64,000 nucleotides of DNA from Mobula hypostoma (GCF_963921235.1 NC_086109.1:11718001-11782000), one strand, 5' to 3'. Shown: positions 18,880-57,267, counted from the stretch's first letter. Program-made: numbers and translations. Notes: a model not told the origin generated them from the letters alone.

Positions 18880-19071
18880 TTACTTTTTGAATGCAATTGT
18901 AGAATACTCTATCGGCTCTGAAGCTGGAGGCTCGATAACTGATGGCTTGTTCTCCTCCGGGCTGCTGGAAGGGTTCACATTATCGTATGTGGCGGAGTCT
19001 TCCTGAGGGTGGCCAGTAGGCTGAATTGCCACAGTGGCGTAGGTAACTCCTGCTTCCTTCTCTTTGGAGAG
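18880..19071 (-). CDS. Gene A terminal exon 7, ITIM-bearing cytoplasmic tail
   Basis: Acceptor tctcattctctgtctgcag|, phase 0; LSKEKEAGVTYATVAIQPTGHPQEDSATYDNVNPSSSPEENKPSVIEPPASEPIEYSTIAFKK then TAA. Confidence 0.92.
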   Translation of the reverse strand, partial: LSKEKEAGVTYATVAIQPTGHPQEDSATYDNVNPSSSPEENKPSVIEPPASEPIEYSTIAFKK

Positions 19072-19159
19072 CTGCAGACAGAGAATGAGACAAAGTGTTA
19101 ACTCTTCAGTGAAATTATATTGGCTTTAATTGCTCCCATAGTAAAAAAAAAAGGGGCTA

Positions 19160-19810
19160 TGGTATAAAACTATGTAATTGCTATTTATACAGTCTGGTAC
19201 TGTGGTGTAGCAGGTACTGCTGTGGTCTCCATATCAAGAGGGCAGATATATAACCTGGAGTATTGTATACAGTTCTGGTCGCCCATTATAGGAAGGATGT
19301 TGAGGCTGTGGGGAGGGTGCAGAAGAGATTCACCAGGATGCTACCTGGATTAAAAGGAATGTGCTACACCGAGAGGGTGGACAAACTTGGGTTGCCTTCT
19401 CTGGAGCGGCAAAGGCTGAGGCGTGATCTGATCGAGGTTTATAAGTTTATGAGAGGCAAAGGCAGAGTAGACAGTATCTTTTTCCCAGGGTTGAAATGCC
19501 TAATATCGGAGTGCATGCATTTCAGGTGAGAGCGGGTAAGTTTGAAGGATATGCGAGGGGCAAGTTCTTTTTTTTGCGAAGAGTGGTGGGTGTCTGAAAT
19601 ACGGTGCCTAGGGTGGTGGTAGAGGCAGATACATCAGGGAATTTAAAGAGACATTTAGAGAGGCACTTGAGTGTGAGGGACATGGATGGATATGGACATT
19701 GTGTAGGCAGAAGGGATTAATTTAGTTAGACATTTCATCACTAATTTAATTGGTTCAGCACAACACTGTGGGCCGAAGGGCCTGTTCCTGTGCTGTACTG
19801 TTCTATGTTC
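19160..19810 (+). mobile_element. CR1 LINE 3' fragment
   Basis: ORF 19263-19529 YRKDVEAVGRVQKRFTRMLPGL..RRDLIEVYK; tail ttctatgttc. Confidence 0.85.
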
Positions 19811-20079
19811 AATTAGCCGGGGAACAAAATGTTAAGGATATTCATATCTGGGATAAGTTCCTTGGAGAGGGTTAACCAATACACGGGAGTTTTAGAAGAC
19901 CAAGAAAGAATCCTGTAGAATCATAGAAACAGCACAAAAACATTCCTTCACACCACTGAGTGTATGCAACCATTAAGCAGCCATCTTTACATTAATCCAG
20001 CCTAATTCATTTCATCTTCAACTTACTGAAGGTTCTGTCCACTCCTGTCAACTCACTGAAGATTCTGTCCACTCCACTC

Positions 20080-21460
20080 CACTCTTCAAGAAGGGAGAAA
20101 GACAGAAGAAAGGAAACTATAGGCCAGTTAGTTTGATCTCGGTGACTGGGAAGAAGTTGGAGTCAATTATTAAAGATGAGATTTTGGGTACTTGGAGGTA
20201 CCTGATAAGATGGGCCATAGTCATTATGGTTTCCTTAAGGGGAAACTCTTGCCTGACAAATCTGTTGGAATTCTAAGAAGAAATAACAAGCAGGATAGAC
20301 AAATGGAAATCTCTGGATGTTCTGTAGTTTGGATTTTCAGAAGGCCTTTGATAAGGTGCCACGTGTAAGGCTGCTTAACATGTTATGAGCCCATGGTATT
20401 ACTGGAAAGATTCTAGCATGGATAAAACTGTGGCTGATTGGCAGGAGGCAAAGAGTGGAAATAAAGAGAGCCTTTTCTGGCTGGCTGCTGGTGACTATTG
20501 GTGTTCCACAGGGGTCTGTATTGGGACCGATTCCTCTTACGTGACATGTCAATGATTTGGATGATGGAATTGATGGCTTTGTTGCAGTTTGATGATGATA
20601 TAAAGACAGGTGGAGGGACAGGTAGTTTTGAGGAAGTAGAGATGCTACAGAAGGACTTAGACAGATTAGGAGCATGGGCAAAGAAATAGCAGATGGTATA
20701 CAGTGTCCGGAAGTGTATGGTCATGCACTTTGGTAGAAAAATTGAAAGGCTTGACTATTTTCTAAATGGGGAGAAAATACAAAAAACTAAGGTGCAAAGG
20801 GACTTGGTAGACCTTGTGCAGGATTCCCTAAAGATTAATTTGCAGGTTGAGTCTGTGGTGAAGAAGGCAAATGTAATGTTAGCATTCATTTCAAGAGGAC
20901 TAGAATATAAAAGTAAGGATGTAATGTTGAGACTTTATAAAGCACTGGCGTGGTTTCACTTGGAGTATTATGAGCAGCTTTCTGCCTCTTATTTTAGAAA
21001 CATGTGGTGAAACTAGACAGGGTTCAAAGGAGGTTCACGAAAATGACTCCAGGACTGAATAGCTTGACCTATGAAGAGTGTTTAATGGCTCTGGGCCTGT
21101 ATTTGCTGGAATTCAGAAGAATGAGGGGTGACCTCATCGAAACCTATTGAATATTTCCTATGGGGGGAGAGTCTAAGAGCAGAGGACAGCCTCAGAATGG
21201 AGGTGTGTCCTTTTAGAACAGAGATGAGACATTTATTTAGCCAGGGAGTGGTGAATCCATGGAATTCTTTGCCACAGGTAACTGTGGAGGTCAAACCTAT
21301 GTACACTTAGTGCAGATTCTTGATTCGTCACAGCATGAAGAGATATGGGGGAAGACAGGAGATTAGGGCTCAGAGGAAAGTTGGATCAGCCATGATGAAA
21401 TGACAGGGCAGACTCAATGGGCCAAATGGCCTAATTCTGATCCTATATCTTAGGGTCTTA
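20080..21460 (+). mobile_element. CR1 LINE RT to 3' end, degenerate
   Basis: DFQKAFDKVP, GVPQGSVLGP and FDDD remnants; ORF 20693-21010. Confidence 0.88.
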
Positions 21461-21799
21461 TTGTCATATTATTTGACTCTACTAACATGTCCTGTACGTC
21501 TTTTGGATTTGGGGGAAGCTGAAGCACTTGAAGAAACTAGTTTCGTAAACGGAAGAACATGTAAACTCAACACAGATACTGTTTGAACCCGGTAGCTGAA
21601 TGTGTGAGTTAGAGGCTCTATGATGTCTCGCATCGGCACAAATTGGTAATTGGTTTATCAGTGTCACATGTACTGAAGTACAGTGAAAATCTTGCTTTAC
21701 CTATTGCCCATACAGATCAATTTATTTTGACTGTGCATTGATGTACTACAAGGTTAAAACATTATGACAATAAATTGCTACAGGAGAGTGGGTTTGAGA

Positions 21800-22085
21800 G
21801 GCATAAGTAGCGTCTGGGTAGCGTGACACTATTAGAGCTCAAGGTATCAGAGTGCAGAGTTCAAATTCATCACTATCTGTATGGAGTCTGTACATTCTCC
21901 TCGTGACTGTGTGGGTTTCCTCCAGGTGCTCCAGTTTCCTCCCACCTTCCAAAGATGTACCGGTTAGTAGGTCAATTGGTTATTGTAAATTGTCCAGTGA
22001 TTAGACTAAGTTAAGTCGGTGGGTTTCTGGGTGGTGCGGCTCATTGGGCAAGAAGGGCCTGTTTTGTGCTGTATCTCTTAATAAA
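21800..22085 (+). mobile_element. tRNA-derived V-SINE (HE1-like)
   Basis: Central gggtttcctccaggtgctccagtttcctccca V-domain; CR1-like tail gggcctgttttgtgctgtatctc. Confidence 0.75.
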
Positions 22086-22388
22086 ACAAATCCATCATGG
22101 AATGGTGGATCACACTCGATGGGCCAAATGGCTTCATTCTCTTCCTATATCTTATGGTGCTATGATCTTAAGTTTATGGAGTACACGGTTCAGGAGAAGG
22201 AGATGGGAAGCTGTTCTCTTGAGCTGAAGGGTACGGAACAATGGGGCACACTCTCAGAACAAGAAGCCAGGCACACAAATGTATCAAAATCTCCTGCAGT
22301 TTAGTGTAAACATTTCATTACACTCGTGAAGTGATGTGAGATGCTTTACTACTTTGACGGCAGTAATTGCAAAGCAATTGTTGGTTTG

Positions 22389-22634
22389 GGGCAGCACAGT
22401 AGCATGGAGGCTAGCGTAATGTTATCACAGTGCCAGCAAACTGGATTCATTCTCTGCCTGTAAGGAGTTTGTACATTCTCCAGTGACTGTGTGCGTTTCC
22501 TCTGGGTGCTCCAGTTTCCTCCCACATTCCAAAGACCTACAGGTTAGTAGGTTACTTGGTCACGTGGGTGTAATTGGGCATTGTGGGCTCGTCGGGCTAG
22601 AAGAGCCTGTTACTGTGCAGTATCTCCAGATAAA
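22389..22634 (+). mobile_element. tRNA-derived V-SINE (HE1-like)
   Basis: ggggcagcacagtagc head, V-domain gtttcctctgggtgctccagtttcctcccacattccaaagac, tail gagcctgttactgtgcagtatctc. Confidence 0.78.
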
Positions 22635-23214
22635 ACATAGAATAGATAGGTCTGATGCGTACTGTATATATAAAACCTACATATCCACAGTAGCAATGTA
22701 TTCTTTAAATGGGATATGTAATCTCTTTAATGTAACGTAATCCAATGTAATTGGATTTCTGAGCTTGGGCAAGGTTTAATTGATGTGGTTTATGGATTGG
22801 ACTCTGTAGTTCATGTTATGATGTGTTTCTAGTTTCTGATCACTCTTTCTTTTGCTGCTACTTTGGGCAATTTTGATCAGGGCAGCCTGCAGATAACGAA
22901 CTGAGCAGAACTGAATATGCCAGGACTCTTTCGATTTTGCGTTTTATATTCTGTTTCTCGCTCACTTTTTTTGCTGCCGTTTGCGCGATTGGATTTTATT
23001 TGCATATGTGGGAAGGAATTTAATGTTTTTCTTTGAACGGGTTCCATTATTTTCTTAGTTTCATAATTGCCTGTGGGGAAGATGAATTTTGGTGTTGTAT
23101 ACTGCGTATGTATTTTGATAATAAGTGTACTTTGAATCGTGAAATGGGTAACATACTCTTCAAATGATATGGCCGACTCCAAAACATCCTATTGTCAAGA
23201 GTGTGCAGCCTTAC

Positions 23215-23267
23215 CGCAGAGTTTGACTTCGGAATAGAATTCTCGGCAGTTGACTCCTTCTCCTTAT
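23215..23267 (-). CDS. Gene A exon 6 (cytoplasmic, 53 nt, phase 1 to 0)
   Basis: tatgtttgtatttttag|AT AAG..GCG|GTAAGG; (D)KEKESTAENSIPKSNSA; supplies exactly the phase change needed before exon 7. Confidence 0.8.
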
Positions 23268-25575
23268 CTAAAAATACAAACATAGCCAGAATAAATAAGA
23301 CTATCTGGAAACATGCTCAGTCAAATGCAAATTTTAACATTCACTGGACCTTCAGATGGGAAAAGGAGAACTGAGATACATGGTGCGTCAATTTTCAGGA
23401 AGAATCTGATCTATTCTTCCTCAGTTGACAACACTTCAGCCTTTGTGTAATGGTTTAAACCACTACTCACAATAAATCTTTACAGGGATGTCATGAGTGT
23501 TAAACAGGGACTTTGTTTTGGCTATTGTTAAGCAAGCTACGTCAGTCATGTGTGTGAACTTAAATCTCTTTATATATTCTGAAACGGTTGCACTGTTTAA
23601 TTTCCATTCATTCACTGTGAACTAGATTGTATAATAATTTTCACATTTGAGTATTGTTGGTGATTGCCTTTTTCTATGCATATTGTCTTAGGTGTCTATT
23701 CATATTTCTTTTGGGTATATAAAAGGCAATTGTATCATTCCTTGTTGTTCCAAGGAAGGTCCATATGAGAATGGTTACTGGGTTGAAGGACTTTGGTTGC
23801 AAACAAAGGCTGAGGAAAGTGGGAATGTTTCTTTTTGGGGAAGGCTGAGAGGATAATTTGATAGAAGCATATAAAGTGCTGAGTTGGTGAACAAAGTGGA
23901 TAATGGGAGACACAGGAGATTTGCAGATGCTGGCTTTCTTGAGTAATGCCCACAAAATATTGGGGGAACTTAGCAGGTCAGACAGTGTCTATGGAGGGGA
24001 ATAAACAGTTGTCATTTTGGTCTGAGACATTTCATTGGGATTGGAAAGGAAGGGCAGAAAGCCAGAATGGCTTCTTCCTTTTCAGTCTCAATGAAGGTTC
24101 TCGACCTGAAATGTCAACTGTTTATTTCTTTCCATGAATGTTGCCCGGCCTGCTGAGTTCCTCAGGCATTTTGTGTGTTTGGATGGTGGGAGGCTGTTCC
24201 GGCTGGCAGAATAGTCAGGGACTAAAGGTATCAATATAAAATAAAGGAGAAGAAAAGTAAAACTCATGTTAGGAATTGCTTTTTTATGCAACATGTGGTT
24301 AGAATCTGGACTACACTGCCTGCGGATGTGGAGAAGGTAGGCTTCCTTGTGGCCTTCAAAACAGAATTGGATAAATGTGTGGTGAAGAAAGGTTTGGAGA
24401 GTGGGCTGGTATGGAACTAGTGAGTTACATTGGTTGAAAGCTGGCAAAGACATGATGGGCCAAATTGCTTCCTCCTGTATTGTAAACATTCTCTGATTCC
24501 ATGATCTGGGCTGATGCTGCATGGTTAACCAGAGGAAATGTTTCAATATGGATGTATATTTAAGGCAGAGATTGATAGATTCTTGATTAGTCAGGGCATG
24601 AAGGGATGTGGGAAGAAGGCAGGAGATTTGGTCTGAGAAGGAAAATAATCAGCCATGATGAAATTGCTGAGCCGACTTGATAGGCCAGATGGTCTAATTC
24701 TCCTCTTATATCTTATGGTCTTATGATATCAAGGGAATGCCCTTCAGCTGGACGAAAATGATTACCAAGGCACCATTTAGAAGAGCAGAAGCTAATCCTG
24801 ATGTCCCTTAACCAACATCACCAAACTGATGATCTAATCGTTATCTTTTTGCTATTTGCTGTACTTTTGCCTTGACTGCCATATTTTCTTTCAATATCAT
24901 TGTGTCAGTATTTCAACCATTATTCATTCTTTATAAAGTAGTCAGGACAATTTGTGGTTGAAAATTGTGCAATATATGTATAAGTCTGACTGGTTGAGTT
25001 GTTCTCTGATCTTGGCAATTTATTTGCAAGCGTTCCATCACCATACACGGAGACATCATCCTCGTATGGTGACGAAACGTTTGAAAATGGATGCCAAGAC
25101 CAGACCCAACCATCAACCACCTGAGCTACACATTTTTCGAGTTATTTCCAAGTATAAATATATTTCTCCATGGAAAAATTCCTTTCAAGGGCATCTGAAC
25201 TGCAATACTGGTCTTATTTTGATGTTGCAGGCTGCTCATTTATTCTCTAATCTTGTAATTCTGCTTACATGTCTGCCTTCCTTTCTGAGATTCCATCATG
25301 ATTTGTAAGTATCCACTGGATTTTTTAGTATTGGCTTGCAGTCTCTCTGGTTGGCTCCACTTAAACCCAACTCACGCAAGAACATTTTCATAAAGCAGGG
25401 AGGCAAACGCGAGGCAAAACTTTTATGAACTGTTACACTGCAGATTTACCATTTCCTGTCTGATGGTTATACCAGCTTTCTATTTCCCTACCATGCTGGA
25501 AAATGCTACTGATACATATGTTAAAAAGCCCTTTCCTGAGACTTTCGAATTCTTGTTAGAATTGATCCCACTCAC

Positions 25576-25647
25576 CTGTCTCTTGCCCTTCAATTGCCTG
25601 CTTCCCTTTAAATTCCACTTTGCAGCCATCCATATGTTCATTCAGAG
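25576..25647 (-). CDS. Gene A exon 5 (cytoplasmic, 72 nt, phase 1 to 1)
   Basis: ttattcacag|CT CTG..ACA G|GTGAGT; (A)LNEHMDGCKVEFKGKQAIEGQET; symmetric, so it could be skipped. Confidence 0.68.
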
Positions 25648-26909
25648 CTGTGAATAATTAAATGCAAAGGCAGACCCTCAAAGATTGAGCCCAGTCAATA
25701 ATTATCATTCCAGTGAAAAGTGAACCAGTTGTGAACTACTTTAGACCAATCGTATTGATTGGGTAGGACTCAGTTGCTATTCAGCTTTTGCTTCACTTGA
25801 AGGAGATGACTCCATTTCCTTAAAATCAAATTTCACACAGAAACCACTGAATTTAAGACCCTCTTTATATTGTGGGATATTGAATATGTTGGAACTTTGG
25901 ACTAATGTAATTTGTGCCTCATCTAATTAGCTACCCTTCTCTGCTCAAACCAAACAAAAATATAGAACACACACACACACACACACACAAAGCTGGAAGA
26001 ACTCAGCAGGCCAGGCAGCATCTACGGAAATGAATAAACAGTCGATGTTTCGGGCCGAGACCTGCCATCAGGACTGAGAAGGAAGGCAGGAGCTGCCAGA
26101 ATAAAAAGGTGGGAGGAGGAGAAGGACACTTGCTAGATGACGATAGGTAAAGGTAGGGTGGGGGAGCTCAAGGGCTGGAGAAAAAGGAATCTGATAGGTG
26201 AGGAGAGTGGGTAATAGGAGAAAGGGAAGATTCTCCTAACAGACCAAAAATGCAATATATGCATTACGGGCAATCAATAAGATTATTTAGCAGGTAATCA
26301 AATGGTGCCTGTTTTAACAAAAGAAGAATTTAATGTGTTCTAGCTCATTCATTCAGTGTGTTGATAATTGTTCAAGTAAGTATAATTGTTTTGTTTCTTT
26401 CTGCAGTCCCAAACAGGAGGATGGCCTTGAGTCTGATAGATTGCTGACAAGCAGTCCTTTTAATTAACAAATAAAAATCACCTTTGTGTTGCTAACGTGA
26501 CTCCCAAACATTTTGTAAAGCATCAGCAAGAAACAATGCACGTTGCATTGTGTCACACACAAATTGTCGCCATGTCACTGGCAATCCTGTCACCATTATA
26601 TTGTGCTGAATAGACAGTGCAACAGAACTCCTATTCTTCCAGAGAGATGAAGGAGGTTCCATCACTTTTGGCTAACTCTTTTATTGAGATCTATGCCAGA
26701 ATAAAATAAAAAAAAGTGAGGTTATTGAAATTAAAATCTGAGGAGACTTGTTCCTGACAACACACATATAGTTCTTGAGTGTAAATGCATGTGCATCATA
26801 GCAAATCAAGATATAATAAGTTAAGTTTGTTTTATATCATGTGATTAGTGTTTCTTTGTAGCAAGGATTTACCTTAATGCAAAAACTTTGCTTTATTTTC
26901 TGAACTTAC

Positions 26910-27010
26910 CTTTATTTTTCTGCTTTCTCACTTTTTTCATAACTAGTACCAGGAGTCCGAGAAACACCATAGTTAGTATTCCAAAGACTAGTCCAAGTAT
27001 TATGAAAAGC
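26910..27010 (-). CDS. Gene A exon 4, transmembrane (101 nt, phase 2 to 1)
   Basis: (W)LFIILGLVFGILTMVFLGLLVLVM-KKVRKQKNK; uncharged TM followed by a basic stop-transfer stretch; donor AAAG|GTAAGT. Confidence 0.9.
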
Positions 27011-27492
27011 CTTGGTTTTTATGAAAAAGAGAGTAAAAAAGAACAGTAAGATAAGGTCAGAATGTATCAATTGAATATGCACCATGAAATATGATGGTAA
27101 TCATATATGCAATATAATTTACCTGATATAATGGCTGTCATTTTCTAACATCAGATTACAATCTAGGACACTGAAGTTAACTTCAGTGCAGCTGAATGTT
27201 GGGAGTGTGCTCAACTGGCAGCCAATAATTTTGCATGTGTTTAACCCTAGCAACCAATGTGGAATTACACCCTCTCACACGCCAAAAGCAATGTGGCATT
27301 GAGTCAGTGATCCATCTACAATGGTTTAATGATAGCTGGAGTTCTGATAAAGAGACATTGATTGCATTCCCGCTCACTTGCTGAAGCCCCAGGGACATAA
27401 TCAATTTCTCTTTATCTATCATAAAGTAACATTGGTTCACTGGTAACAGTGGCATTCCCTAGAACCCCTTTGACACTCGATCCCACTCTTAC

Positions 27493-27544
27493 CAGTTACC
27501 AATGTTACTCTGCTCAGCCACAGAAGGACCTATGACTTCCACGA
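27493..27544 (-). CDS. Gene A exon 3, stalk (52 nt, phase 1 to 2)
   Basis: ttttttctttttatattcag|TC GTG..AAC TG|GTAAGA; (V)VEVIGPSVAEQSNIGN(W); same length and phases as the gene B stalk exon. Confidence 0.87.
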
Positions 27545-30500
27545 CTGAATATAAAAAGAAAAAAATGAACTCCCTTCCTCTTTCCACAACCTCATAAATG
27601 ACTCCACTGCAGCTTTTGTAAAAATTTCCAGTCAAAGTAAATTTATTATCAATGTCACCAAATACTACCCTGAGATTCATTTTCAAGCAGGAACTCAAAG
27701 CAGAGTAAAGAAATACCATAGAATCAATGAAAAATTACAATGACAAACAGCGATTGTTATTTCACAATTGATTGATCCTCTGTACAATTTTTACAGCCTC
27801 AGCCGGCATACGCTTTTGATGAAACATGCTCATGTTTATTGCTATCATGGGCATAAATACACAGAGTACAAATGCCATGAAAATTAACTTTATAATGACA
27901 GATGGACCCTATCAGTGGTAATACCATTATTAAATCTAACAGTGATATCATAAAATCCACTTCAGACATTCTCTCTTCTCTCCCTTCCCGTTGAGCAAAA
28001 TATATAAAAACCTGAAAGCAGGCTCAAGAACAACAACTATCATGCTATCTGGTGAAATGACGATTGAATGGTCCCCTTAAACAAAAAGATGAACTCTTAA
28101 CTTCATAATCAATCTTGTTAGGACCTTGCACCTTATTGTCTGACTGCACTGCACTTTTGCTGTAATTGAAACACTTCTTGTCTTCATTTTAATATTGTTT
28201 TACCTTGGACTATACAATACACCATTGTAATGAAATGATCTGTGTGAACGGCATGCAAAACAATATTTTACATTGTACCCGTGTACACCTGATAATGATA
28301 AGACAATTTACTAAACCAATTGCTAATTTACAAATTAATGAATTGCACTTCCTAGTTTTATTCCCTTCTGTAGATTTATGACATATTATATTAGGATGCA
28401 AATTAAAGTAAAAGCAGAAGTGTGAATGTGGTTTTGTCGTAGAAAATGCAACTCTGCAGTAACACGTTCATGCTGGGGGAACTCATTTGATCAGGCTCCA
28501 TCTATTGGGAAGAATAAACAGTTGATGTTTTGGGCCAAGAGTCTTCATCAGGTCATGATGAAGGGTCCCGGTCTGAAATGTCAACAGTTTATTCCCCAAC
28601 ATTTTATGCGTGTTGCTCCAGATTTCCGACATCTGAAGAATCTCTTATGCTTTGAATTCTGGAAACTAATGTTAAATGAGGTGTTGAAAATTTCTTCCAG
28701 TCTATGCTAAAGATTCGTGCAGACCCATCTGGGCACTGGTGAAAGATGGAAAGACACCCCAAATTTGGTAGTTTGATAGTTTCTTGGTAGGTTGATCTCC
28801 AAGTTTGCTGGTGATTAATGAAAATGATGCAGTTGGAGATTGTCACTAGATTATGCTTAATGTCAGTCTTCTGGAATATATTTTAGTTGTTAACTTATGT
28901 ATAGTAATATTATTTTGTGTTGTGTGAGTTATGTATATATACTGTGTTATGTACCTGGGTCTGGAGGAATGTTGTTTCATTTGGCGTATGCATATACAGT
29001 ATATGGTTGAATGACAATAAACTTGAACTTGATGGGGGGGAGGGTCAATTTCCACTCCTCAGCTGATAGTTCAGCAGAAATCTTGATGGAAATTGGGGAA
29101 TTTCTGTGAATCTCTATAATAGTTAACTGTGCTGCACTGAACTGATGGTTCACTATGTCTGTGCAATGACGTGAACTAGCAGGTGAATAGCAAGACATCT
29201 GGCCCTGAGGACCACCACTAGCTCAGCACTAGGGCTAGCAGTGGTTCCATAACTTGTGGAGCCGGGGGGGGGGCGGGCACAAACTCTTCCCCTCTGCTTT
29301 ACCCCTCTCAAAACTGGTGCATCTGGCAAGATTCTATTCTGTTTAGTGGGGAGTCATTGAGTTTCACAGGAAAGGTCCCTGGAATTACCTGTGTTTCCCG
29401 CCTGAAATTTTAATCCATTTACACATTGCCAATTTTTAGCATTTTATTAATGTTATAAATTAGTTTATTTGTTACATGTACATCGAAGTGTTAACACATA
29501 CAGTGAAATGCGTCATTTTGCATCCAAGAACAATACAGTCCGGGGTTTGAGCTGGGCGCCTGAAAGTGTCATCATGCTTCCAACGCCAAAATAGCATTAC
29601 CATAACTCACTAACTCCAACCCTAATCCATCCGTCTTTAGAATACAGGAGGAAACTGGAGCACCCGGAGGAAACACACAGTCATGAGGATAACATACAAA
29701 ATCCAATGGGAATTGACTCCTGATTGGTGGTTGTTGGTGCTATAGAACGATTGCGCTAATTGGTACACTACTGCACCGCCCCTGATCGATCTATTACTTA
29801 AACTCGGCATAATTTTTTCAAATGGTTTTCAGAGCAACCTGGAATCAGTGCAAGGGACTGTGGCAGGGCGAGCTGTCTGAGGGGTAAAGGGTTGTTTTGT
29901 TGGCCTGCACTCGTTTCCATGGCTGGGTCAGCACTCGCAGAAGGCTCTTTCAGGAAGGCGGGCAGCAGGAGTGAAGGGAATGGGTGGGACGCTGGGAAGC
30001 TTGTGGCTACATAAGAATAACCAGGCTGCCGACATCTCACAAGAGATGGGAGCCGGGCTCGGAACAATGCAGCCCTGCTGAGCAGCTGCTGGTGTTATAA
30101 TGCCCTTTCCCACTATGTGTACGGTCCGCACCAAGGAAGCCATCTCCTTGATGGTAAAGAAAACTGAAAAAAAAAATTGAGCCCACATAAAATTGGAGCA
30201 CCAGCCTCCCCACTATCAAGGACATCTTCCATCATTATGTACTTCCACCATCTGGGACAGGCCCTGTCGTCAGTACGACCAATAGGGAGAAGATATAGGA
30301 GCCTGGAGACCCATAGTTAACATTTTAGAAGAGAGTTTCTTCCTCTCTGCCATCAGATTTCTGAACTGTCCTTGAACCCCTGAACACAACTCATTATTCT
30401 GTATTTTCTCTAAATTATTTATTTGCTTTGTTTTTGTACATTTATAGATCTGTATGTCCTTGCACTGCACAGCTGCCACAAAGCAACAGAACTCACGTCA

Positions 30501-33289
30501 TACGTCGGTGATAATAAATCTCAGTTATAACAGCATGGTTGTAACATCAACATTCCCACCTGAACCCTATAATCTTTCACTCCCTTACCTATCAAATACT
30601 TCTTTCCAAAATTCAGGGGTTTCAATTGAGCTACCCGTTGAGGAAGGAAGTTCCAAAGACTCGTAAACTTCTGAGAGAAATAGCTTCATATTAACTCTGC
30701 CTTGAATGGACGATCCCTTAATTTTAAACAGTGGTTCCTAATTCTAGATTCTCTCACAAGAGGGAGTAGTATCTTTATGTCCAGGCTCTCAACATCCACC
30801 GTCTTGCATGCTTTCATCTAGTTTCCTCTCAAACTTCTCCATTCCAGTGGATACAAACTATCTGCCCAAACTTCCCTTAAAGGACTATTAATCTATAAAG
30901 TTGGATATGTAGTAGGATGAGAGTTTTAGCAGATTGGTTAGGCGGTGTGGGGTGCATTTTCCCGGGAACAAAGAAGCCTGAGAGGTGAGGCGTATAAAAT
31001 TCTGAGAGGCACAGGTAGGTAGATAGAAAATAATCTGTCTCCCATGATAAGGGTGTCTAAAATCAAAGGGAAAAGGTGAGAGGGCAGAGGTTTAAAGGGG
31101 ATAATGGAGTAGTAAAAATAACGACTTTTATGAAGTATCTAGACAAGTAATTGACTGAGCATGACATAAAGGGATATGAAATTATTGAATGGAATTAGTA
31201 CAGATAAACAAGATGGCCAGTATAGAACTGGAGGACCAAATGGCCTGTTCTTTGCTGTACATTTCACTGATTCTATGAGTCTACAGCACAGTGTTAAAGT
31301 CTTAGGCACGTATATATCGTTAGGGCGCTGAAGATTTTTACACAGTACTGTGGTAATTTTATTTATTGCACTGTACAGCTGCTGCATAAAACAAATTCAT
31401 GACATACGTGAGTGATGGTAAATTTAATTCTGATATGGGTCTCTATTGTGGACTGATAGTGGGAAGGGGGCAGGGAGAGAGGAATCGTGGTTGGGAAAAG
31501 GGGATGGGAGAGGGGAGGGAGTGGGAAGAGCTGGAGAGACATTCTGTAATGATCAATAAACTAATTGTTTGGAGTCAAATGACCTTCCCCGGTGGCCTGG
31601 GTATGTCTCTACCTTCAACTTCCCCCCCCAAACCCCACCGCCCCGGCACTCCTACTCTGCCACCTGTTCCACACCCCTTCCACAGCACTCCACCCTCACC
31701 ATTCCCAACATCCTCTGCTCCCACCAGGTTTACAAACTCGATTCCTGCTTCACGTTGACAAATACAGAGCTGTGCTAAAGTCTTCGGCAGCCTAGCTATA
31801 TATACCTGTATGTGTCAAAGTCTTTTACACAGATTCATTAATGTCTCAGTAATATCCCATTTTATTACTTTGTTGTATTTGGGTCGGTCCACAACAGGAA
31901 AATGGACACTCACCTGAGTCTTTGTTTGTCTGAAGGAAGTAACTTTTGAACTGTTAAAACATATAAAAGCATTATTTTGTTATTCATGCATTTCTTGATT
32001 CATTCTCAACTGTTGTGATGCAACACAGACAAATAAAAAGCTCGTTGTGGTAGATTAACAAGGGAAATTATCACAAGAAAACAGAGAAAAAGATGTATAA
32101 TTTGTGTTTTTCAGGTTTTTCTCTGTTTGTTCTTTCTCCAACACCCTTTTACTAATTCACCAACTGCACAGCTCCATAGGAAGAACATCACTCTAGCAAC
32201 ACTGTCGTCACACTCTCAGCGATTTCCCTTAGTCCTATCTATTGTTGGCACCCTCCCTGAAACATAAAAAATAAAAGCTAACTGTTTTCTCACTCTCTCT
32301 GATGTGATAAACGAACGTGAATGATAACTCTGCATCTCTTTCCAAATATGCTCCCTACCCTACTGACCACCATTTTCAATTGATTTCTTCTTGATCCATT
32401 ACAAGGAAAAGAGCAGATGGAGAAGGAGAGAACAAAGCGATATATAAAACTTGATCTACCTTTCATAATCTTACACAACTTTATTTCTTACTCTCCAACT
32501 GCCTTCATAATCTGTCAACCAGGTGGTTTAATAAACAACGTATCACCATGGCAATTCTGCTCTCACTCTCTCAGAGATACCCCAACCCCATCCTTTTGCA
32601 CTTAAAACTAATCTTTTTATTCAGTTTTCCAGTTTGATGAATGACCTTCAAACTGAAATAATGTTTCTGCAGATGGTACCTGACCTGCTGAGTGTTCTCA
32701 GCATTTTCTGATTTTATTTAGGATTTCCAGCATCTGCAGTTTTTAAAATATTTTCATTGTCTATTAAAATGCCTCTGTGATATCAGTTTTCTTCTGTACG
32801 ATTAGATCTACATTCTTTCAGGCAAATGGAGGTGACTCCAGCATACTCCCACCTTGTCAATGGTGAAATGGCATTGGGGAGACAGTGGGTGAGATACACA
32901 ACCTCTGTCCTGATCTTGGGTCCAAAGTGTTAATGCTTATTTCATTTATGTCGAGATACAGCACACTACATGCCCAATGAGGCTACGCTGCCCAATAATA
33001 CCCATGTGACTAATTAACCTACTAACCCATATATCTTTGGAATGTGTGGAAAAACTAAAGCACCTGGAGGAAACTCACACGGTCAGGGAAGAACCTACAA
33101 GCTCATTACAGGCAGTGATGGAATGGAACCTGGGTCCCTGGCACTACAATAGAGTTATGCCAACTGCTATGCCAACATGTCGCCTACTAACATAACTAAT
33201 TCGGCTCAGTTTCTCACGTACAGAAATGTAAAGGTGAATGTCAGACATGTTAACAAACATAAATTTGACCAAACAAATCATTCTGTTAC

Positions 33290-33500: not shown

Positions 33501-33554
33501 AAATCATTCTGACAGATTAATAAAGGCAGTTAGAGAGAGAAAACAGAGAAAGGA

Positions 33555-33796: not shown

Positions 33797-34132
33797 CTTC
33801 ACGAATTTTCAGTTCTACAGCACTTGAAGGATCCAGAAGATGAGGTTTATCTATTCCACACCAATACCAACCCTCATCACTTTTTCTTAATCTTTCTATT
33901 CGTATTGTAAGTTCTCCTTTTTTGTTGTTAGCTGCAATTGTTATTCTGCCGTCTCCACTTTTCATCTCAGGGCCTTGCGTTTGTACTAAAACAGTACAGG
34001 TCCTGCGGTAGTATCCCTTGCACCAGTACTTCTGATAGCTTCTGAAAAATGGGTTAAACTTGCAGTCGATTTCAACCTCATTTCCCACCGTTCCGGTTTT
34101 CGCACTTGGTCCAGTTATGTCAGCGTATGTCA
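33797..34132 (-). CDS. Gene A exon 2, Ig V-set domain of CD300/pIgR (CMRF35-like) type
   Basis: acttacag|TG ACA..GAA G|GTAAGA, 336 nt, phase 1-1; canonical C..W..DEGWYWC plus the family-specific extra pair in KYWCKGYYRRTC. Confidence 0.95.
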
Positions 34133-40346: not shown

Positions 40347-40386
40347 CTGAGAGGAAAGTGACCAATAGTAGAAGAGTCACACCCAT
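40347..40386 (-). CDS. Gene A exon 1, signal peptide (MGVTLLLLVTFLS, phase 1)
   Basis: aaaaATGG Kozak context, donor TCAG|GTAAGA; splicing to exon 2 gives MGVTLLLLVTFLSVTYA-DITGP with a plausible cleavage site. Confidence 0.87.
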
Positions 40387-49013: not shown

Positions 49014-49539
49014 GATATTTTAGGTCTTGGAGCTGTGGGGACCAACTACACTGATGCTCCTATTGAGAAGACCAGCATTGGCTCTCTTACTCTTAGAGAA
49101 GTAAGTTCCTTTGCTTCCTACAATAAATCCAAAAGGTGGTCATCACAACTTGAGGAGTCCCCTTAAGTGTAATTGAAGCTAAAATACATGGTGGTAGGTT
49201 TGTAGCCCTGGACTTTCCTTACAGACTGGTTCCCCACCATTTCTGCTTTCCAGCCCCCAGCTATGGGTCTAATTGAGATTATTGGAAGTTCCATTTTACA
49301 CAGCAAGACACCAGTGTGCAACATTTTCCCTGTGTGCTGTATTTCCCTAGTATTGGGGAGCAGAGACGCAGCAAGATGATCAGCGGTTTTGACAGCACAG
49401 CATCCGTGCGCCAGTCCATGATGTGTGCGTGGTGAATCCGAACACGTCGAGGATAGTTCTTGCTCTTTAGTTAGCTGTATAGTCTTGAAGGTGTTGGTGA
49501 GTTATGGAGCAGCTGTGTAATGTAGCAGACCCTTACACC
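49008..49539 (-). other. Probable non-coding 3' UTR exon of gene B
   Basis: Strong acceptor ttctttgtttttgtcttccag| at 49540; pairs with the donor 14 nt after the gene B stop; non-repetitive sequence ending at AATAAA. Confidence 0.55.
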
Positions 49540-49749
49540 CTGGAAGACAAAAACAAAGAATGACTCATATCTTGCAAAGCAGAATGCGAGCTTTGTGTTC
49601 CATCAATTTCCCCTTAACAATCATTAATTTAAGCACATGCTGATTAAAAGGCACTATTGTGTTAATGAATAAAATCAGAGAGTGCAAGATACCCAGCAGG
49701 TCAAGGAACTGACAGCCTGTCTGTAAATCCTATTGAAAGTTTTACAAGA

Positions 49750-50620
49750 AAATTTTGCAGATGACATAAAGTTGGTGGTGTTGGGTAGAGTAAAAGTTTG
49801 TCGTAAGTTACAATAGGACATAGACAGAATGCAGAGCTGGGCTGAGAAAAGACAGATGGAGTTCAATCCAGAGAGGTGTGAAGTGATCCACTTTGGAAGG
49901 TTCAAACCTGAAGGCAAGACTTTTAGCACAATGAAGAAACAGAGAGATCTTGCTGTGCATATCCATAGGTCCCTCAAAGTTGCCCTGCAAGTTGTTAGGG
50001 TGGTTAAGAAGGCATAAGCCTTCATTAGTCAGAAGACTGAGTTCAAGAGCCACTAAGTAATGATGAAGCTCCATAAAACCACACTTGGAGTATTGTGTTC
50101 TGTTCTGGCCACTTCATTATAGGAAGGATGTGGAAGTTTTAAAGAGGGTGCAGAGGAGATTACCAGGATGCTGCCTGGATTAGAGAGCACGTTTTATAAG
50201 GGAAGGTTGAGTGAGCCAGGGCTTTTCTCTTTGGAGTGAAGGAGGATGAGAAGTAACTTGCTAGAGATTTATAAATGACAAGAGGCATAGGTGGAGTGGA
50301 TAGCCAGCACCTTTTTCCCACGGTGGCAATGGCTAATAGGAAAGGGTTTAATTTTAAGGTGATTGGAGAAAAGTGTAGTAGGAAGGATGTTAGAGGTAGG
50401 TTTTTTTTACATAGAAAATGGGGATGGGTGCATGGAACACACTGCCAGGGATGTTCGTATAGACAGATACTTTAAGGACACTTAAGAGAGGCTTACTAAC
50501 GGATGAAAGAAAAATAGTTATGTGGGAGGGAAAGGTTAGATTGATCTTGGAGTATTTTAAAAGATCGTCACAACATCATGGACTGAAGGACCTTTACTGT
50601 GCTGTACTGTTCTATGATCT
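49750..50620 (+). mobile_element. CR1 LINE 3' fragment, degenerate
   Basis: FADD remnant and ORF 49829-50017 WAEKRQMEFNPERCEVIHFGR. Confidence 0.82.
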
Positions 50621-51041
50621 TTGTTCTAAGTCCACGGTAAGTCTGCAGTTGGAGGCATTAAAAACACATTAGTTATGTCAAGCTGTAATCAAAGAAGAAA
50701 GAAAGAGGATTTGTTTCACAGCAAAGTGCTCCCTCATTTTGATCAACACAGATATGGAATCATTCATGGCATAGGCGTAGCTGGAGTGTATTCAGTCCAT
50801 TGCATGCGATTTAAACTTTGGAGAAACTACTGTTTTAATAGAAACAATTTAAATGCCATTGGTACTTCATAATTGGCAAATGCTTACTTCCAAGGTCTAT
50901 GGTCTATTTACAGTGTTGTGTTTTCATTTCAGAAGTATTTATGAAGATGTTTTCAAAGAATAGCTCTTAGATGTTCTTAAGGATAAACCTGTAAGTACGG
51001 AAACAATCAATTAGAAAGAAACCTTACCAGGTTTTCTTTGT

Positions 51042-51138
51042 CTATATTCTCATGGCCACTATACCCCAGAGAAGAAGAATGACAAAGAAGATCCAACGTA
51101 AAATGCTCCATATGAAATGGTATTTGGAATTATTTTTC
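51042..51138 (-). CDS. Gene B transmembrane exon with Arg and immediate stop (exon continues to a donor at 51028)
   Basis: ctctttcctcacag|G AAA..; (R)KNNSKYHFIWSILRWIFFVILLLWGIVAMRI then TAG; the phase 2 acceptor matches the stalk exon; CTG|GTAAGG donor 14 nt after the stop. Confidence 0.88.
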
Positions 51139-51234
51139 CTGTGAGGAAAGAGGCAGCTAGTTTAATCAAAAACATTTATGACATGTGTGAACCGATATTT
51201 GTATTTGATTGCAAGATAGTTGTGGTGTTAGTGA

Positions 51235-51333
51235 CCTGTTATGCTGTTGGCCTGTTATGTTGCAGGCCCTTTATGCTGTTGGCCTGTTACGTTGTAGGCT
51301 CATTATGCCGTTGGTTTGTTATTATGTTGTTGG
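51235..51333. repeat. 16-bp minisatellite (cctgttatgctgttgg), about 6 degenerate copies
   Basis: Directly visible about 100 bp from the TM exon acceptor. Confidence 0.75.
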
Positions 51334-52532
51334 TCAGTTATTTTATATTATATTTATTTTAACTTTTTTCATGCTCTAGAGCCTTACGGTTAACAAAGGG
51401 GTCCATGGACCCCAGGTTGGGAACCCCTAAGGTAGATGTAAAGGTCATGCAAAGAGTTAAACCATTTCAGTGGAAAATTACAAGTCAAACCCATTGGTTT
51501 GAGTACTGAGTCATACATATACCAGACTATTTAAGGCTGGCAGACTTCCTTCCCTATAGGACTTTGATAAACCAGATGTGTTTTCATGCAAAAAAATCGT
51601 TTTGATATTAGTTTATTTTCTATATCTATTTAAATAATGTAGTTAATTAAATAAGTATACATTTTCTATCTGATTTGCTGGAATTTGAACCCCTGATTTC
51701 CCAGATCAGTGATGCAATGTAATTACTGCCTTGCTTCCAAACCTCTGCTGCAGCCTATGTTGCACAGTGTAATAAACAGAAGGTCTGTGAGGTGAAATTG
51801 ACTCTTTCATGCTTTCTTTGTACAGAGTAACAGATAATGTTACCTTGTGACGTGATGGTGGAGCAGTTAGTGCTGGTACCTCCCATTTCCATGGGCCCAC
51901 ATTCAATCCTGAACTTGGGTGCTTTTTGTGCGGAGTTTCCATGTTGCCTTTCCCCAAATGATCTGGTTTCCTCCCATCACCAAAAGACTTACTGATTGGC
52001 AAACTGAACACTGTAAACTGCCCCTTAGTGTTGGTTAATGTTAAAAAGATTCAAAGGGAGTTGATAGACATTTGTGAGAGAGAATATGTAGCTGGGGTAC
52101 AGGGAAAGAGAGAGGGGACCAGATTGATGAGATTGCCTCCCTAGGAGTCAGCACGGATCTGAAGGGCCAAAAGTGTTGTCATAAGAATACCCTATCCACA
52201 TACATTAAATTAATTTTTAGGGACTGGTAAATTCCCAAAAGGCCATAGATCATTAAAGATAGGAGCAGAATAGGCCATTTGGCCTATCGGGTGTGCTCTG
52301 CCATTTGATCGTGCCCGTTTATTTATTTAGAGATACAGTGCAGACCAGCCCATTCCAGCCCAATAAGCTGAATCCGCCAGCAAACCACCTATTTAACTCG
52401 AGGATAATCACAGAACAACTTACAATGACCAATTAATCTAATAACCGGTACATCTTTGGAATGTGGGAGGAAACTGGAGCACCTGAGGAAACCCACACAG
52501 TCACGGGGAAATTGTACAAACTCCTTACAGCT

Positions 52533-53525
52533 GGTAACAACAGGAATTCTGCAGATGCTGGAAATTCAAGCAACACACATAAAAGTTGCTGGTGAACGCA
52601 GCAGGCCAGGCAACATCTCTAGGAAGAGGTGCAGTTGACGTTTCAGGCCGAGACCCTTCGTCAGGACTAACTGAAGGAAGAGTGAGTAAGGGATTTGAAA
52701 GTGGGAGGGGGAGGGGGAGATCCAAAATGATAGGAGAAGACAGGAGGGGGAGGGATGGAGCCAAGAGCTGGACAGGTGATAGGCAAAAGGGATACGAGAG
52801 GATCATGGGACAGGAGGTCCGGGAAGAAAGACAAGGGGGGGGGGACCCAGAGGATGGGCAAGGGGTATATTCAGAGGGACAGAGGGAGAAAAAGGAGAGT
52901 GAGAGAAAGAAGGTGTGTATAAAAATAAGTAACAGATGTGATACAAGGGGGAGGTGGGGCATTAGCGGAAGTTAGAGAAGTCGATGTTCATGCCATCAGG
53001 TTGGAGGCTACCCAGATGGAACATAAAGTGTTGTTCCTCCAACCTGAGTGTGGCTTCATCTTTACAGTAGAGGAGGCCGTGGATAGACATGTCAGAATGG
53101 GAATGGGATGTGGAATTAAAATGTGTGGCCACTGGGAGATCCTGCTTTCTCTGGCCAGCAGAGCGTAGATGTTCAGCAAAGCGGTCTCCCAGTCTGCATC
53201 GGGTCTCGCCAATATATAAAAGGCCACATCGGGAGCACCAGACGCAGTATATCACCCCAGCGGACTCACAGGTGAAGTGTTGCCTCACCTGGAAGGACTG
53301 TTTGGGGCCCTGAATGGTGGTAAGGGAGGAAGTGTAAGGGCATGGGTAGCACTTGTTCCGCTTACACAGATAAGTGCCAGGAGGGATCCCACCACTAAGC
53401 ACATCTTTCCCTCCCCCGCTCTCTCTGCATTCCGCAGGGATCGCTCCCTACGCAACTCCCTTGTCCATTCGTCCCCCCCCATCCCTCCCCACTGATCTCC
53501 CTCCTGGCACTTATCCGTGTAAGCG
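52533..53525 (-). mobile_element. Penelope-like element 3' part (GIY-YIG plus terminal repeat) with an inverted 5' segment (about 53386-53525)
   Basis: ORF 52962-53402 is GIY-YIG; 53386-53525 is the reverse complement of the sequence that continues colinearly in the 61-62 kb copy. Confidence 0.92.
52633..52668 (-). ncRNA. Minimal hammerhead ribozyme motif, intact core, one stem I mismatch
   Basis: Minus strand agtc-CTGACGA-agggtctcggcct-GAAA-C-GTC-aact. Confidence 0.68.
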
Positions 53526-54159
53526 TTTTATTTTGGGTTATGATAATTTTCCTTGTGGGTCGGGTATGGTACAAACAAATGAGCACAGTCACCTATTCAT
53601 CCTTTGTTGTTAGTTTATTTAGAGATAGAGACTGAGCAGGGTTTGGATATTTTTTGTTGACTGCCTAGTTGCTTATATCATTAATATTGTTTCTCGCTGT
53701 ATAAAATCGTTCGCCTTTGCTGGTTTCGTAATAAAGGATTGAACGTGCTTTTTTTGACTTGGAACACCGTTATTTGGAGGTGTGGCAATACAGTATTGAG
53801 TCGCTCAGTTAGTCTCTTGGCAATTTTGGTTTCCTTTTCAAGTAACCGCTACTGTCCCAATGACAGCAACGCGGGGATTTCCAAATTAAACTGTAGATCA
53901 TCTAAAACCAGCAAGCTGCACTAGTTTCATGGTTTAGTTTCAGCAAGCACTGGTAGTGTCTACATTATCCAAGCCCACTGCCAACATCGAGAGTGCCGAC
54001 TTACCATAGGGATTGAAACATCAAGTCCTAGTAGCTCTACTTATAACATTAGGGCATAGGCATCAGCAGGAGAAATTCAGCACATTGATTCCCTAGCACC
54101 CATTTTACACTTTTGCATGATCAATAATATTCATCTGACTCTGAAATGGTTTAAAATAA

Positions 54160-54960
54160 ATCTTCAATTTCCTAATGCAGATGACACCACTGCTGGTAAA
54201 ATCCCAGATGATGACAAGGAGGCATACAAGATTGAGAAAGATTTGATGGCTGAGTGGTGTTGTAACAACTTTGCACTCAATGTCAATAAAACCAAGGAAT
54301 TAATTGTGGACTTTAGGAAACGGAGCATTGGGAGAACACATACCAATCCACATTGAGGAGACGAGTAGTGGTGGAAAGAGTGAGCAGCCTCTAGTTTCTG
54401 GATGTCAACATCTCCTGGCTTCTATCCTGCGCATAACACGTTAATGTGACTACAAAGAAGGCTCTCCTTCATTAGGAGTTTGAGCATATCAACAAAGATT
54501 TGCTAATTTGTATAGATGTAAAGCGGAGATCATTCTGACTGGTTGCATTACACCCGGGTATAGAGGCTTCAATGCACAAGATCGCAAAAGGCTGGAGAGG
54601 GTTGTAGACTCAACTAGCTCAATGGCAGACACAACCTTCCCCACCATCAAGGGCATGTTCAGGAGGTGGCGTGTTGAGAAAGTGGCATCCTTTATTAAGA
54701 TCACTCACCATCAGGGACATGGTCTTTTCTCATTTCTACCATCAAGGAGAAGTTACAGGAACGTGAAGATCTACACTCAGTGATTTAGGAACAGCTTCTT
54801 CCATTCGTCATCAGAGTTCTGAACAGTCCATGATCCTAAGAATACTACCTCATTGTTCCTTTTATTTGCGCAATTTATTTATTTTGTAAATTATATTAAT
54901 TTTAAGTCTTTGCTCTATTCTGCTGCTGCAAAGCAACAGATTTTACATCACACAAGGCAG
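54160..54960 (+). mobile_element. Rex1/Babar-like LINE RT C-terminus and 3' end
   Basis: ADDTT..WCCNNFALNVNKTKELIVDFRK; ORF 54508-54783. Confidence 0.8.
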
Positions 54961-55119
54961 TGATAATAATCCTTATTTGGAGTCTGATTTTGACCTGTAG
55001 ATCCTCAAAGAATCATTAATCATCCCATGCACAGCAGTAAAATATTATTCATCGTTACAGTTGTGCAGATATAGAGCAAGTGCTTATAAGGTATAATTTT
55101 ATAAAGATTTTGCTTTTAC

Positions 55120-55171
55120 CTGATTTCCTGCGCTGATAAGTTATCTGTGACTGGAGGAAGTAACTGATGAC
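55120..55171 (-). CDS. Gene B stalk exon (52 nt, phase 1 to 2)
   Basis: tttccctcatttttaacag|GT CAT..ATC AG|GTAAAA; (S)HQLLPPVTDNLSAQEI(R); identical length and phases to gene A exon 3. Confidence 0.86.
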
Positions 55172-55529
55172 CTGTTAAAAATGAGGGAAATATCTGTTAG
55201 GTGGTTGTGCAGGTAAATGTTCATTATAATCCATGCCATTTACTTTGCACTAAGCAAGTACTGTATATAAAATATAATGGCATGAAATTAATATCAACAG
55301 GATATAGTTTAATTGCTTAATAGATTTTTATTTATTTTTTAGAATAGTACAGCACATGAAAGGGCCCTTCATTCCTTTGTTTCTGTGCTATGGTGCCAAA
55401 TGAAAGAACTTGCATCTTCCACGCACATGATCCATATTCCTCCCTTCCTTTCATGTTTATATGTCTGTCTAAATGCCTCTTAAATATCGCTCTCATGTTA
55501 TGGGTGGCAGGGTGGAAACATGTCTCCAC

Positions 55530-55855
55530 CAGAGGTGGTGTAAGATGCTCCTTCCCTCCGCTAGCCTGCAGGTCACCCTTGGGCAAGGTGTAGCACCTGC
55601 TTAGCCCCCTGATCAGCATCACGTGAAGCCATGGGAGCAGGCAGTGGATGGTCATATGAGCAGCTGGTGCATATCACAAGCCCTGGTTATGTGACCACTG
55701 ACGACAGGCAGACAATCGCTGAAGAGCTTTGTAAAGACACTGCCCAGAAGAAGACAATGGCAAACCACTTCTGTAGGAAAATTTGCCAAGAACAATTGTG
55801 GTCATGGAAGGACCATGATCGCCTCTGTCTTACAACACGACACGTAATAAACAAA
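55530..55855 (+). mobile_element. RTE-related SINE or LINE 5' fragment
   Basis: gggcaaggtgtagcacctgct..gacaatggcaaaccacttctgtag..ggaccatgatcgcc resembles RTE 5' UTR-derived SINEs, recognised from memory only. Confidence 0.5.
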
Positions 55856-56934
55856 CGAATAATGTCTGCTTGTACAACCACCTCTCACAGCATAAGTGGA
55901 TATGAGCTATAACCTGAGAATGGACAGATTTGAATTGTTTTCTCTGGATCACCGAAAGCTGAGGGGAGATCTGATCGTTTATAGAATTATGGGAAACATA
56001 GATAGGGTAGATAGAGTCTCTCCCAGGAGAGAAATGTCAAATAGTAGAAGGCATAGCTTTAAGACTAAAGGGAGAAAGTTTAGGGGAGATGTACAGGGTG
56101 AGCTTTATTTTACCCAGATGCTAGGTGCCTCTCTTATAGCTCATATCCACTTATGCTGTCAGCATCATGGTGTACTTCCCAGACACCCTCTCCAAATCTT
56201 CTCCACCGTTAATGTTATGGGACAACCAGAACCGAACACTAACTCCAAATGTGGCCTGACCAAACTTTCATACAGCTGCAACATGATTTCTTGAATTTTA
56301 TACCCAATACCCCAGCTGCTAAAGGCAAGCATGCCAAATGCCTTACTTACCGCCCTGTTTATTTATTTTTATTTAGAGATACAGCATGGAATAGGTTCTT
56401 TTGGCCCTTTGAGCTGCACCGCCCAGCAACCCCCGACAACTCCAATTTAACCATAACCTGATCACAGGACTAGTTACAATGACCAATTAACCTACTAACC
56501 AGTACATGTTTGGACTGTGGGAGGAATCTGGGAGGTCTGGAGAAAACCCACAAAAAGTGTCCTTACAGAAGACCCTGGGATCAAACTCTGAATTCTGACA
56601 CCCCAGGCTGTAATATCGTCGTGCTAACTGCTACGTTGCTGTGGTGTCTTTTGATGTTGCCACTTTCAAGAGCAATGGATTTGACCTTAAGATCCCACTG
56701 TGCATCAATGGTCTTAAGGTCCTGCCATTCTCTCAGTACTTTCCCTTTATGTTTGCCCTCCGCAAATGCAACACCTTACACTTTTCAAATTAAATATGAA
56801 CTGCCCTTTCTCTGCCCATATCTACAGTGCAATTCTGTTGAAAGCTTTAAACAATTTAGCAAATTATGCATTAAGCCATACAGCAGTCTATGCAAAAAAA
56901 CATTAATAATTACAGAAGTATATTCAAGCCTTAC

Positions 56935-57267
56935 TTTCAAAGATGTCCAGTTTTACAGGAATATGCAGGTCCATCAAAAATCCGGTAATTCCACACCAAT
57001 ACATGTCTTGATCATTCAGAGTTAGCTGGTCCATGGTGACTGTAAACTCCCCGGCTCTTTTATCATCTTTAATGCTTATCCTGCCTTCAGAGATTGTCTT
57101 CTCAGAGCCTTGAGTTTTTACCAGAATGGTACAGGCTGACCTATTCTTGCCTTTGCACCAGTATTTCTGATAGTTGCGGAAAAACATGCGGTAGGTACAG
57201 GTAATCTGGACTGATTCTCCCTCATTTCCATTTACTACTTGTGGTCCTCTTAGAGTAGCATTTGCAA
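56935..57267 (-). CDS. Gene B Ig V-set exon of CD300/pIgR (CMRF35-like) type
   Basis: tgaacag|TT GCA..GAA A|GTAAGG, 333 nt, phase 1-1; xANATLRGPQVVNGNEGESVQITCTYRMFFRNYQKYWCKGKNRSAC..DQDMYWCGITGFLMDLHIPVKLDIFE. Confidence 0.95.

Follow-up and report, generated by a model that had tools for sequence, protein, structure and literature searches.

Two neighbouring minus-strand genes in a window of the devil ray Mobula hypostoma genome (the window being the whole analysed stretch of 64,000 nucleotides, with positions counted from its first letter) each encode a receptor with a single variable-type (V) immunoglobulin (Ig) domain. We consider it likely, with a probability of roughly four in five, that these genes, here called A and B, belong, as neighbours on one strand, to the modular domain immune-type receptor (MDIR) group of CD300/pIgR-type receptors, A likely inhibitory and B likely an adaptor-coupled activator. 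A first-pass annotation of the window had described them as a hidden pair from a probable cartilaginous fish; the guess at the source was right, and the pair is indeed hidden from an open reading frame track, but both genes are annotated in RefSeq, with orthologues from many sharks and rays, as "CMRF35-like molecules". Gene A is "CMRF35-like molecule 7 isoform X1" (XP_062922506.1, 276 residues), and a protein search with the Ig exon of gene B retrieved, at 100% identity, the 173-residue "CMRF35-like molecule 3 [Mobula hypostoma]" (P0001). An exhaustive HMMER search with the gene A Ig exon led to a 277-residue representative, and XP_062922506.1 sits in the same protein cluster as a Mobula birostris protein. 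The orthologues of gene A, named "CMRF35-like molecule 1" and 252–279 residues long, come from rays, skates, a sawfish and sharks.

The third-best match of gene B comes from the clearnose skate and bears the name "Modular domain immune-type receptor" (UniProt A0S0E7, GenBank ABC86795.1; E 2.8e-35); it covers 100% of the Ig domain at 59% identity, and on this likeness gene B is the ray counterpart of that skate protein. From the order of the accessions we take ABC86795.1 to be MDIR1, which reportedly has a positively charged transmembrane (TM) residue, whereas MDIR2 and MDIR3 are said to carry inhibitory motifs of the immunoreceptor tyrosine-based type (ITIMs). In a passage of a study on carp, the skate MDIRs are described as a multigene family of activating and inhibitory receptors with homology to CD300, with MDIR2–4 given as ABC86796, ABC86797 and ABC86799 (PMC3031540, citing Cannon et al. 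2006, Immunogenetics 58:362). Apart from that study and PMC4016189, nothing relevant was found in the literature on CD300, CMRF35 and pIgR in sharks. Because activating and inhibitory CD300-like receptors were published in 2006 and both genes are annotated, a pair of this kind is nothing new for a cartilaginous fish, and the novelty that the first-pass annotation saw in it falls away.

Ig domains and signalling ends

The Ig domains of both proteins match the Pfam V-set family PF07686 above its gathering score (E 1.7e-15 for A, 3e-18 for B), and Pfam returned nothing else of significance for the two full proteins. Searched against all PDB sequences, both domains find their best matches in pIgR domains, CD300F/CLM-1, CD300A and CLM-6, with E-values for pIgR and CD300F/A/CLM-6 of 1e-15 to 1e-50 (1e-15 to 1e-25 for single domains); NKp44 (1e-9) and TREM2 and FCMR (1e-4 to 1e-5) are weaker, and antigen-receptor V domains also trail far behind. 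In an alignment of 51 domains, the cysteines at Ig positions 23, 37, 45 and 91, which correspond to the canonical B–F and the extra C–C' disulfides, are kept in 45–51 of the 51, and these four cysteines together with the DxGxYWCG motif of A and B align with those of rodent CLM3, lizard CLM1 and teleost pIgR. Judged from these sequence features, both are V domains of the CD300/pIgR type with the extra disulfide; the family proposed for them on first inspection is upheld by the Pfam and PDB matches and by the disulfide alignment, and the domains group inside it. Between themselves, the two domains are 44% identical (48/109 positions by BLASTP, E 8e-34) and share the motif FFR(S/N)YQKYWCKG, which reproduces the earlier hand count of about 43% (48 of 112), and a tblastn search of the window revealed no Ig exon of this kind besides these two. 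In a phylogeny of the Ig domains, those of cartilaginous-fish A-type and B-type proteins (the orthologues of the respective genes) form one clade, with support of 100/99, while support is poor (84–87) for the way in which this clade joins tetrapod CD300 and other pIgR-like domains deeper in the tree, where the branching is drawn open.

The signalling ends of the two proteins are opposite. In the product of gene A, a signal peptide and the V domain are followed by a short stalk and an uncharged TM segment; the tail, 111 residues long, contains two ITIMs as well as a YxN site. The first ITIM, VTYA[TSA]V, is present in 13/13 A-type orthologues, as is a C-terminal xEYST[IV], which is an ITIM in rays; the second motif reads TxYxxV in the sharks Heptranchias, Carcharodon and Rhincodon and MEYSTI in Pristiophorus, and the middle YxNV motif is absent in two sharks. 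With its TM segment at 27010–26910 and the motifs VTYATV and IEYSTI conserved, gene A has the uncharged membrane helix and ITIM tail that had been read from the window, and it most likely encodes an inhibitory receptor, as far as its sequence allows a prediction. When phosphorylated, the ITIMs would recruit SH2 phosphatases (SHP-1, SHP-2 or SHIP), and the YxN site may serve as a Grb2-type site.

The TM helix of gene B contains an arginine at position 7 of its 22 residues, in the outer third, and the reading frame stops 2–4 residues after the helix, so that the description of this gene as tailless with a charged membrane segment (exon 51138–51042) was accurate as well. The arginine is invariant, within the motif (I/V)(L/M)RW, in all seven B-type proteins, which are from rays, skates and the shark Mustelus and include one that groups with Callorhinchus; conservation extends beyond the arginine to the whole WxILRW segment. 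A basic TM residue combined with a tail that is almost absent is the established mark of receptors coupled to adaptors with an activation motif of the immunoreceptor tyrosine-based type (ITAM), such as those associated with DAP12 or FcR-gamma, and in mammals an arginine in the outer third of the helix is the FcR-gamma-coupled pattern and a central lysine the DAP12-coupled one. By analogy, gene B most likely signals through its arginine, which would pair with the membrane aspartate of an ITAM adaptor of the FcR-gamma, CD3-zeta or DAP12 type. The signature of a basic TM residue and short tail is also taken up in the discussion of PMC4016189.

Exon maps and transcripts

Sequence extraction agrees with the outline proposed earlier, in which two minus-strand genes have IgV exons of 336 and 333 nt, both phase 1-1 and with AG/GT borders; indeed all exons then proposed have AG acceptors and GT donors, and the reading frames of both genes are intact. 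In gene A, the coding part of exon 1 (40347–40386) comprises the ATG and the signal peptide MGVTLLLLVTFLS and ends at a GT donor. Exon 2 (33797–34132) is the 336-nt IgV exon, and the 37-nt, phase 1-2 exon 3 (31914–31950), which also has AG/GT borders, encodes the stalk VQKLLPSDKQRLR. Exon 4 (26910–27010) contains the uncharged TM helix and a KKVRKQKNK stop-transfer sequence, exon 5 (25576–25647) is a 72-nt cassette, exon 6 (23215–23267) adds 53 nt of cytoplasmic sequence, and the coding part of exon 7 (18880–19071) carries VTYATV, ATYDNV and IEYSTI before the stop at 18882–18880; all of these lie on the minus strand. With the 37-nt exon 3, the model encodes 276 residues and is identical to XP_062922506.1.

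RNA contigs of four runs, each of which contains the entire gene A Ig exon, were placed on positions 23150–27650. The joints 25647/26910 and 23267/25576 are present in 4/4 runs, so that exon 5 is joined at both ends, and contig depth over exons 4, 5 and 6 is roughly 0.5 to 26. These contigs bear out directly the junctions 26910/25647 and 25576/23267 predicted beforehand; for the predicted junctions 40347/34132 and 23215/19071, the support is the exact identity with the RefSeq protein. At one end the contigs continue for about 560 nt past 23215, and at the other those over exon 4 extend by exactly two letters, "AG", beyond 27010 and then carry about 500 more letters that match nowhere in the stretch 23150–27650. 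All sampled words of the gene A Ig exon are present in runs X1–X3. RefSeq isoform X2 corresponds to the 276-residue model minus exon 5, which is found in the ray, skate and sawfish orthologues examined and is missing from the shark orthologues (252–253 residues); the tail therefore seems to have gained exon 5 in batoids. Two intronic repeats of gene A, at 24509–24659 and 25868–26169, have contig depths in the thousands and many loose ends in 4/4 runs, and are highly expressed, dispersed elements.

The stalk is the one part of gene A that had been drawn differently. The first-pass annotation placed a 52-nt stalk exon at 27493–27544 on the minus strand, which gave an open frame of 281 residues ending at 18880. 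In the sampled transcripts this exon is ruled out: contig depth is 0 across 27378–27528, a bin that covers 36 of its 52 nt, in all four runs in which exons 4–6 are covered; its final letters are "TG", whereas the contigs read "AG" past 27010; and it is missing from the RefSeq protein. The junctions 33797/27544 and 27493/27010 and the length of 281 residues are withdrawn with it. Direct splicing of exon 2 to exon 4, which would yield a secreted form, predicts three matching letters past 27010, and the contigs match two; this is exactly what is expected of the 37-nt exon, whose final letters are CAG and which is flanked by a good polypyrimidine/AG acceptor and, as donor, GTGAGT. In the orthologues of gene A the stalk is always of 13 residues, of the type QKLLPSDK(Q/E)RLR, the same peptide that is encoded at 31950–31914, and in Pristis a 13-residue stalk exon occupies the corresponding position (L002:19492-19530). 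A 52-nt stalk exon had been attributed to both genes; gene B has one (55171–55120), but that of gene A is 37 nt long (31950–31914), and the two stalks are recognisably related through an LLP motif. The sequence at 27493–27544 is a convincing decoy: its AG acceptor follows a T-rich tract, its donor is GTAAG, its frame is open and its phase correct, yet its RNA depth is zero, and it stands as a caution for gene models built by hand.

Gene B, which lies upstream of gene A, is represented in the window by residues 15–173 of the 173-residue P0001. Its 333-nt, phase 1-1 IgV exon 2 (56935–57267) is followed by the 52-nt exon 3 (55120–55171), encoding the stalk SHQLLPPVTDNLSAQEIR, identical to that of P0001, and by the coding part of exon 4 (51042–51138), with the TM helix FIWSILRWIFFVILLLWGIVAM that bears the invariant arginine, then the residues RI and a stop; again, all are on the minus strand. 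An exact search of the window for the signal peptide MDFVFLYFMITLS gave no match, and the annotated coding sequence spans 14,266 nt, which puts the ATG near 65.3 kb, just beyond the window's end. The junctions 56935/55171 and 55120/51138, as first drawn, find their support in exact identity with the RefSeq protein. All sampled words of the gene B Ig exon are present in the RNA runs X1, X4, X12 and X13. These runs, like those with the gene A exon, are from the same organism, and run X1 contains the Ig exons of both genes.

Age of the tandem and rival readings

The order B then A, on the same strand and with a spacing of about 9.5–10.7 kb, is found in four batoid genera, Mobula, Amblyraja, Hemitrygon and Pristis. 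In Amblyraja (locus L001) the gene after B begins with an A-type signal peptide, in Hemitrygon a V-set gene of 276 residues lies 9.5 kb downstream of B, and in Pristis pectinata a B-type TM exon that has not been called in the annotation (L002:483-581, plus strand) is located 9.4 kb upstream of the A-type gene. This exon is 76% identical to residues 141–173 of Mobula gene B and may belong to an unannotated or cut-off orthologue. No neighbouring genes are called within 10 kb of the Carcharodon or Mustelus orthologues, and the B protein of Narcine has no entry among the records consulted. In the Ig-domain phylogeny, the domains of one species never group together, and one clade, with support of 100/96, unites the A-type domains of sharks with those of rays. 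An approximately unbiased (AU) test rejects a duplication inside the batoids (p = 0.006) and does not reject monophyly of the B-type domains (p = 0.25). By this phylogeny, the split between A and B predates the divergence of sharks and rays, and the shark–ray A clade and the AU result bear out the earlier impression of an old pair rather than a recently homogenised one.

A bolder proposal, which we put forward tentatively and with clearly less than even confidence, is that the B-then-A tandem has been a syntenic activating/inhibitory module since before the shark–ray split, independent of the mammalian CD300 pairs. If this were true, the (I/V)(L/M)RW motif of gene B would mark an ancestral receptor–adaptor interface in a group of vertebrates from which FcR-gamma has been reported missing, and identifying the partner of gene B would show how far back Ig receptors coupled to adaptors originated.

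Adjacency, opposite signalling ends, a shared C-strand motif, a homologous LLP motif in the stalks and the joint occurrence of both Ig exons in RNA run X1 might all suggest paired receptors in the strict sense of CD300A/CD300C, KIR2DL/DS or PILR-alpha/beta, in which both partners share a ligand and the activating one, derived recently or kept alike by homogenisation, acts as a counterweight to the inhibitory one. We think this unlikely: the Ig domains of A and B are only 44% identical, each type is nearer to its shark orthologues than to its neighbour (52–60% for A; the B-type domain of Mustelus and the Ig domain of gene A are 50% identical), and the A/B split is older than the shark–ray divergence. 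The low identity and the early split are at odds with near-identical ectodomains and a shared ligand. Far less credible still is a single multi-domain gene containing both V exons, or a pseudogene or annotation artefact in the place of one of the two genes; we give such readings hardly any weight. Multi-domain relatives do exist in rays, and one Stegostoma model joins an A-type gene with its neighbour, but gene B stops after its TM exon, and 10.7 kb downstream of B, gene A begins anew with an ATG and a signal exon of its own. Separate orthologous models of 164–173 residues (B) and 252–279 residues (A) recur in more than 10 species, including a cDNA-derived skate protein, and both frames are intact. 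Of the findings that would have overturned the original proposal none was made: the two Ig exons, whose presence in one mRNA was among them, fall in separate gene models, and their domains group within the CD300/pIgR family.

The reading of A and B as an inhibitory and an activating receptor of the MDIR group has several points to reckon with, which weigh against it. In a survey from 2014 (PMC4016189), cartilaginous fish were reported to have no homologue of FcR-gamma, which makes the partner of gene B uncertain. In a search limited by its word index, homologues of the gene A tail were detected in elasmobranchs only, so that its ITIMs are motif matches and not a sign of homology to the tails of CD300A or CD300F. 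The joints between exons 2, 3 and 4 of gene A have indirect support, those of gene B draw on RefSeq identity, the architecture of orthologues and Ig-exon coverage in four RNA runs, and the RNA runs are labelled "RNA?" with their tissues coded. The reported lack of FcR-gamma, together with conservation of the entire WxILRW segment, which suggests a specific helix–helix interface, could also be taken to mean that gene B is not an adaptor-coupled activator at all and that its arginine serves some other hetero-oligomer, or the control of retention and degradation, in a non-signalling decoy or co-receptor. This we hold to be improbable, given the established meaning of a basic TM residue with a near-absent tail and the nature of the absence claim. 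The same survey found no pIgR homologue in cartilaginous fish (PMC4016189), was based on early draft genomes and missed pIgR-like genes now annotated in rays; for Narcine and Leucoraja, the annotation now includes multi-V "pIgR-like" proteins, and these, like the skate MDIR entry, conflict with its claim that pIgR is absent.

We thus continue to favour an inhibitory A and an adaptor-coupled, activating B. Their value is modest: a corrected exon map, inhibitory and activating paralogues that have stayed adjacent through batoid evolution with invariant signalling motifs, and the concrete question, raised by gene B, of which adaptor an arginine-bearing receptor uses in cartilaginous fish. Beyond such bookkeeping the pair matters little, the receptors being annotated and MDIR-type activating and inhibitory receptors having been published in 2006.

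Related genes and known counterparts

Within 10 kb of either gene, the neighbours are V-set genes only. One of them, a third gene outside the A/B pair that is taken from the NCBI gene list, begins at 12440–12517 on the minus strand with an ATG at 12517 and a signal-peptide-like sequence; it starts 6363 nt after the stop of gene A, downstream on the same strand, and its product has 247 residues. No Ig exon for it was found within the window, so that this exon is either divergent or located before window position 1. A third V-set gene nearby would be in keeping with the skate, whose MDIRs are described as a large multigene family. Two annotated shark proteins deserve mention. The 638-residue "pIgR-like" protein of Stegostoma tigrinum (XP_059509194.1, P0008) contains an A-type protein that is complete down to its C-terminal ...EYSTVVFKK, behind which come another leader, a pair of V domains, a TM segment and a tail; it has the look of a read-through fusion and probably represents two neighbouring genes merged by the annotation. 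In Chiloscyllium punctatum, a 180-residue protein (P0033) has an A-type V domain and then a non-TM tail whose beginning (...EGEKI) resembles that of the intron following the Ig exon; it is possibly an isoform that is secreted or retains the intron, or else an artefact of annotation.

Among characterised receptors, the skate MDIR A0S0E7 is a close parallel to gene B: both have a signal sequence that starts MDFVFLYFMI..., a single V domain on a short stalk, a tail of 2–4 residues and a common TM motif, IWxI(L/M)RWIF, which reads IWSILRWIF in gene B and IWNIMRWIF in the MDIR; the Ig domain of gene A falls within the same cartilaginous-fish clade (100/99). The skate protein is from a different species and batoid order, and the ray protein has the longer stalk (173 vs 164 residues in all). 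With pIgR and the teleost pIgR-like proteins, A and B share the V-domain subtype, and pIgR domains D4/D5 have the top summed PDB scores. However, pIgR has 2–5 tandem V domains and a long sorting tail where genes A and B have one V domain each, and nothing in the two genes indicates Ig transport. The mammalian CD300 family offers a parallel in organisation: a single V domain with the extra C–C' disulfide and the KYWC.G and DxGxYWCG motifs, and ITIM-tailed members (CD300A, CD300F) beside tailless ones with a charged TM segment (CD300B/C/D/E), as in A and B. The likeness probably does not amount to 1:1 orthology, since the ray A and B domains belong to a clade of their own apart from rodent and lizard CD300, and at 44% identity the ectodomains of A and B are far more diverged from each other than those of CD300A and CD300C.

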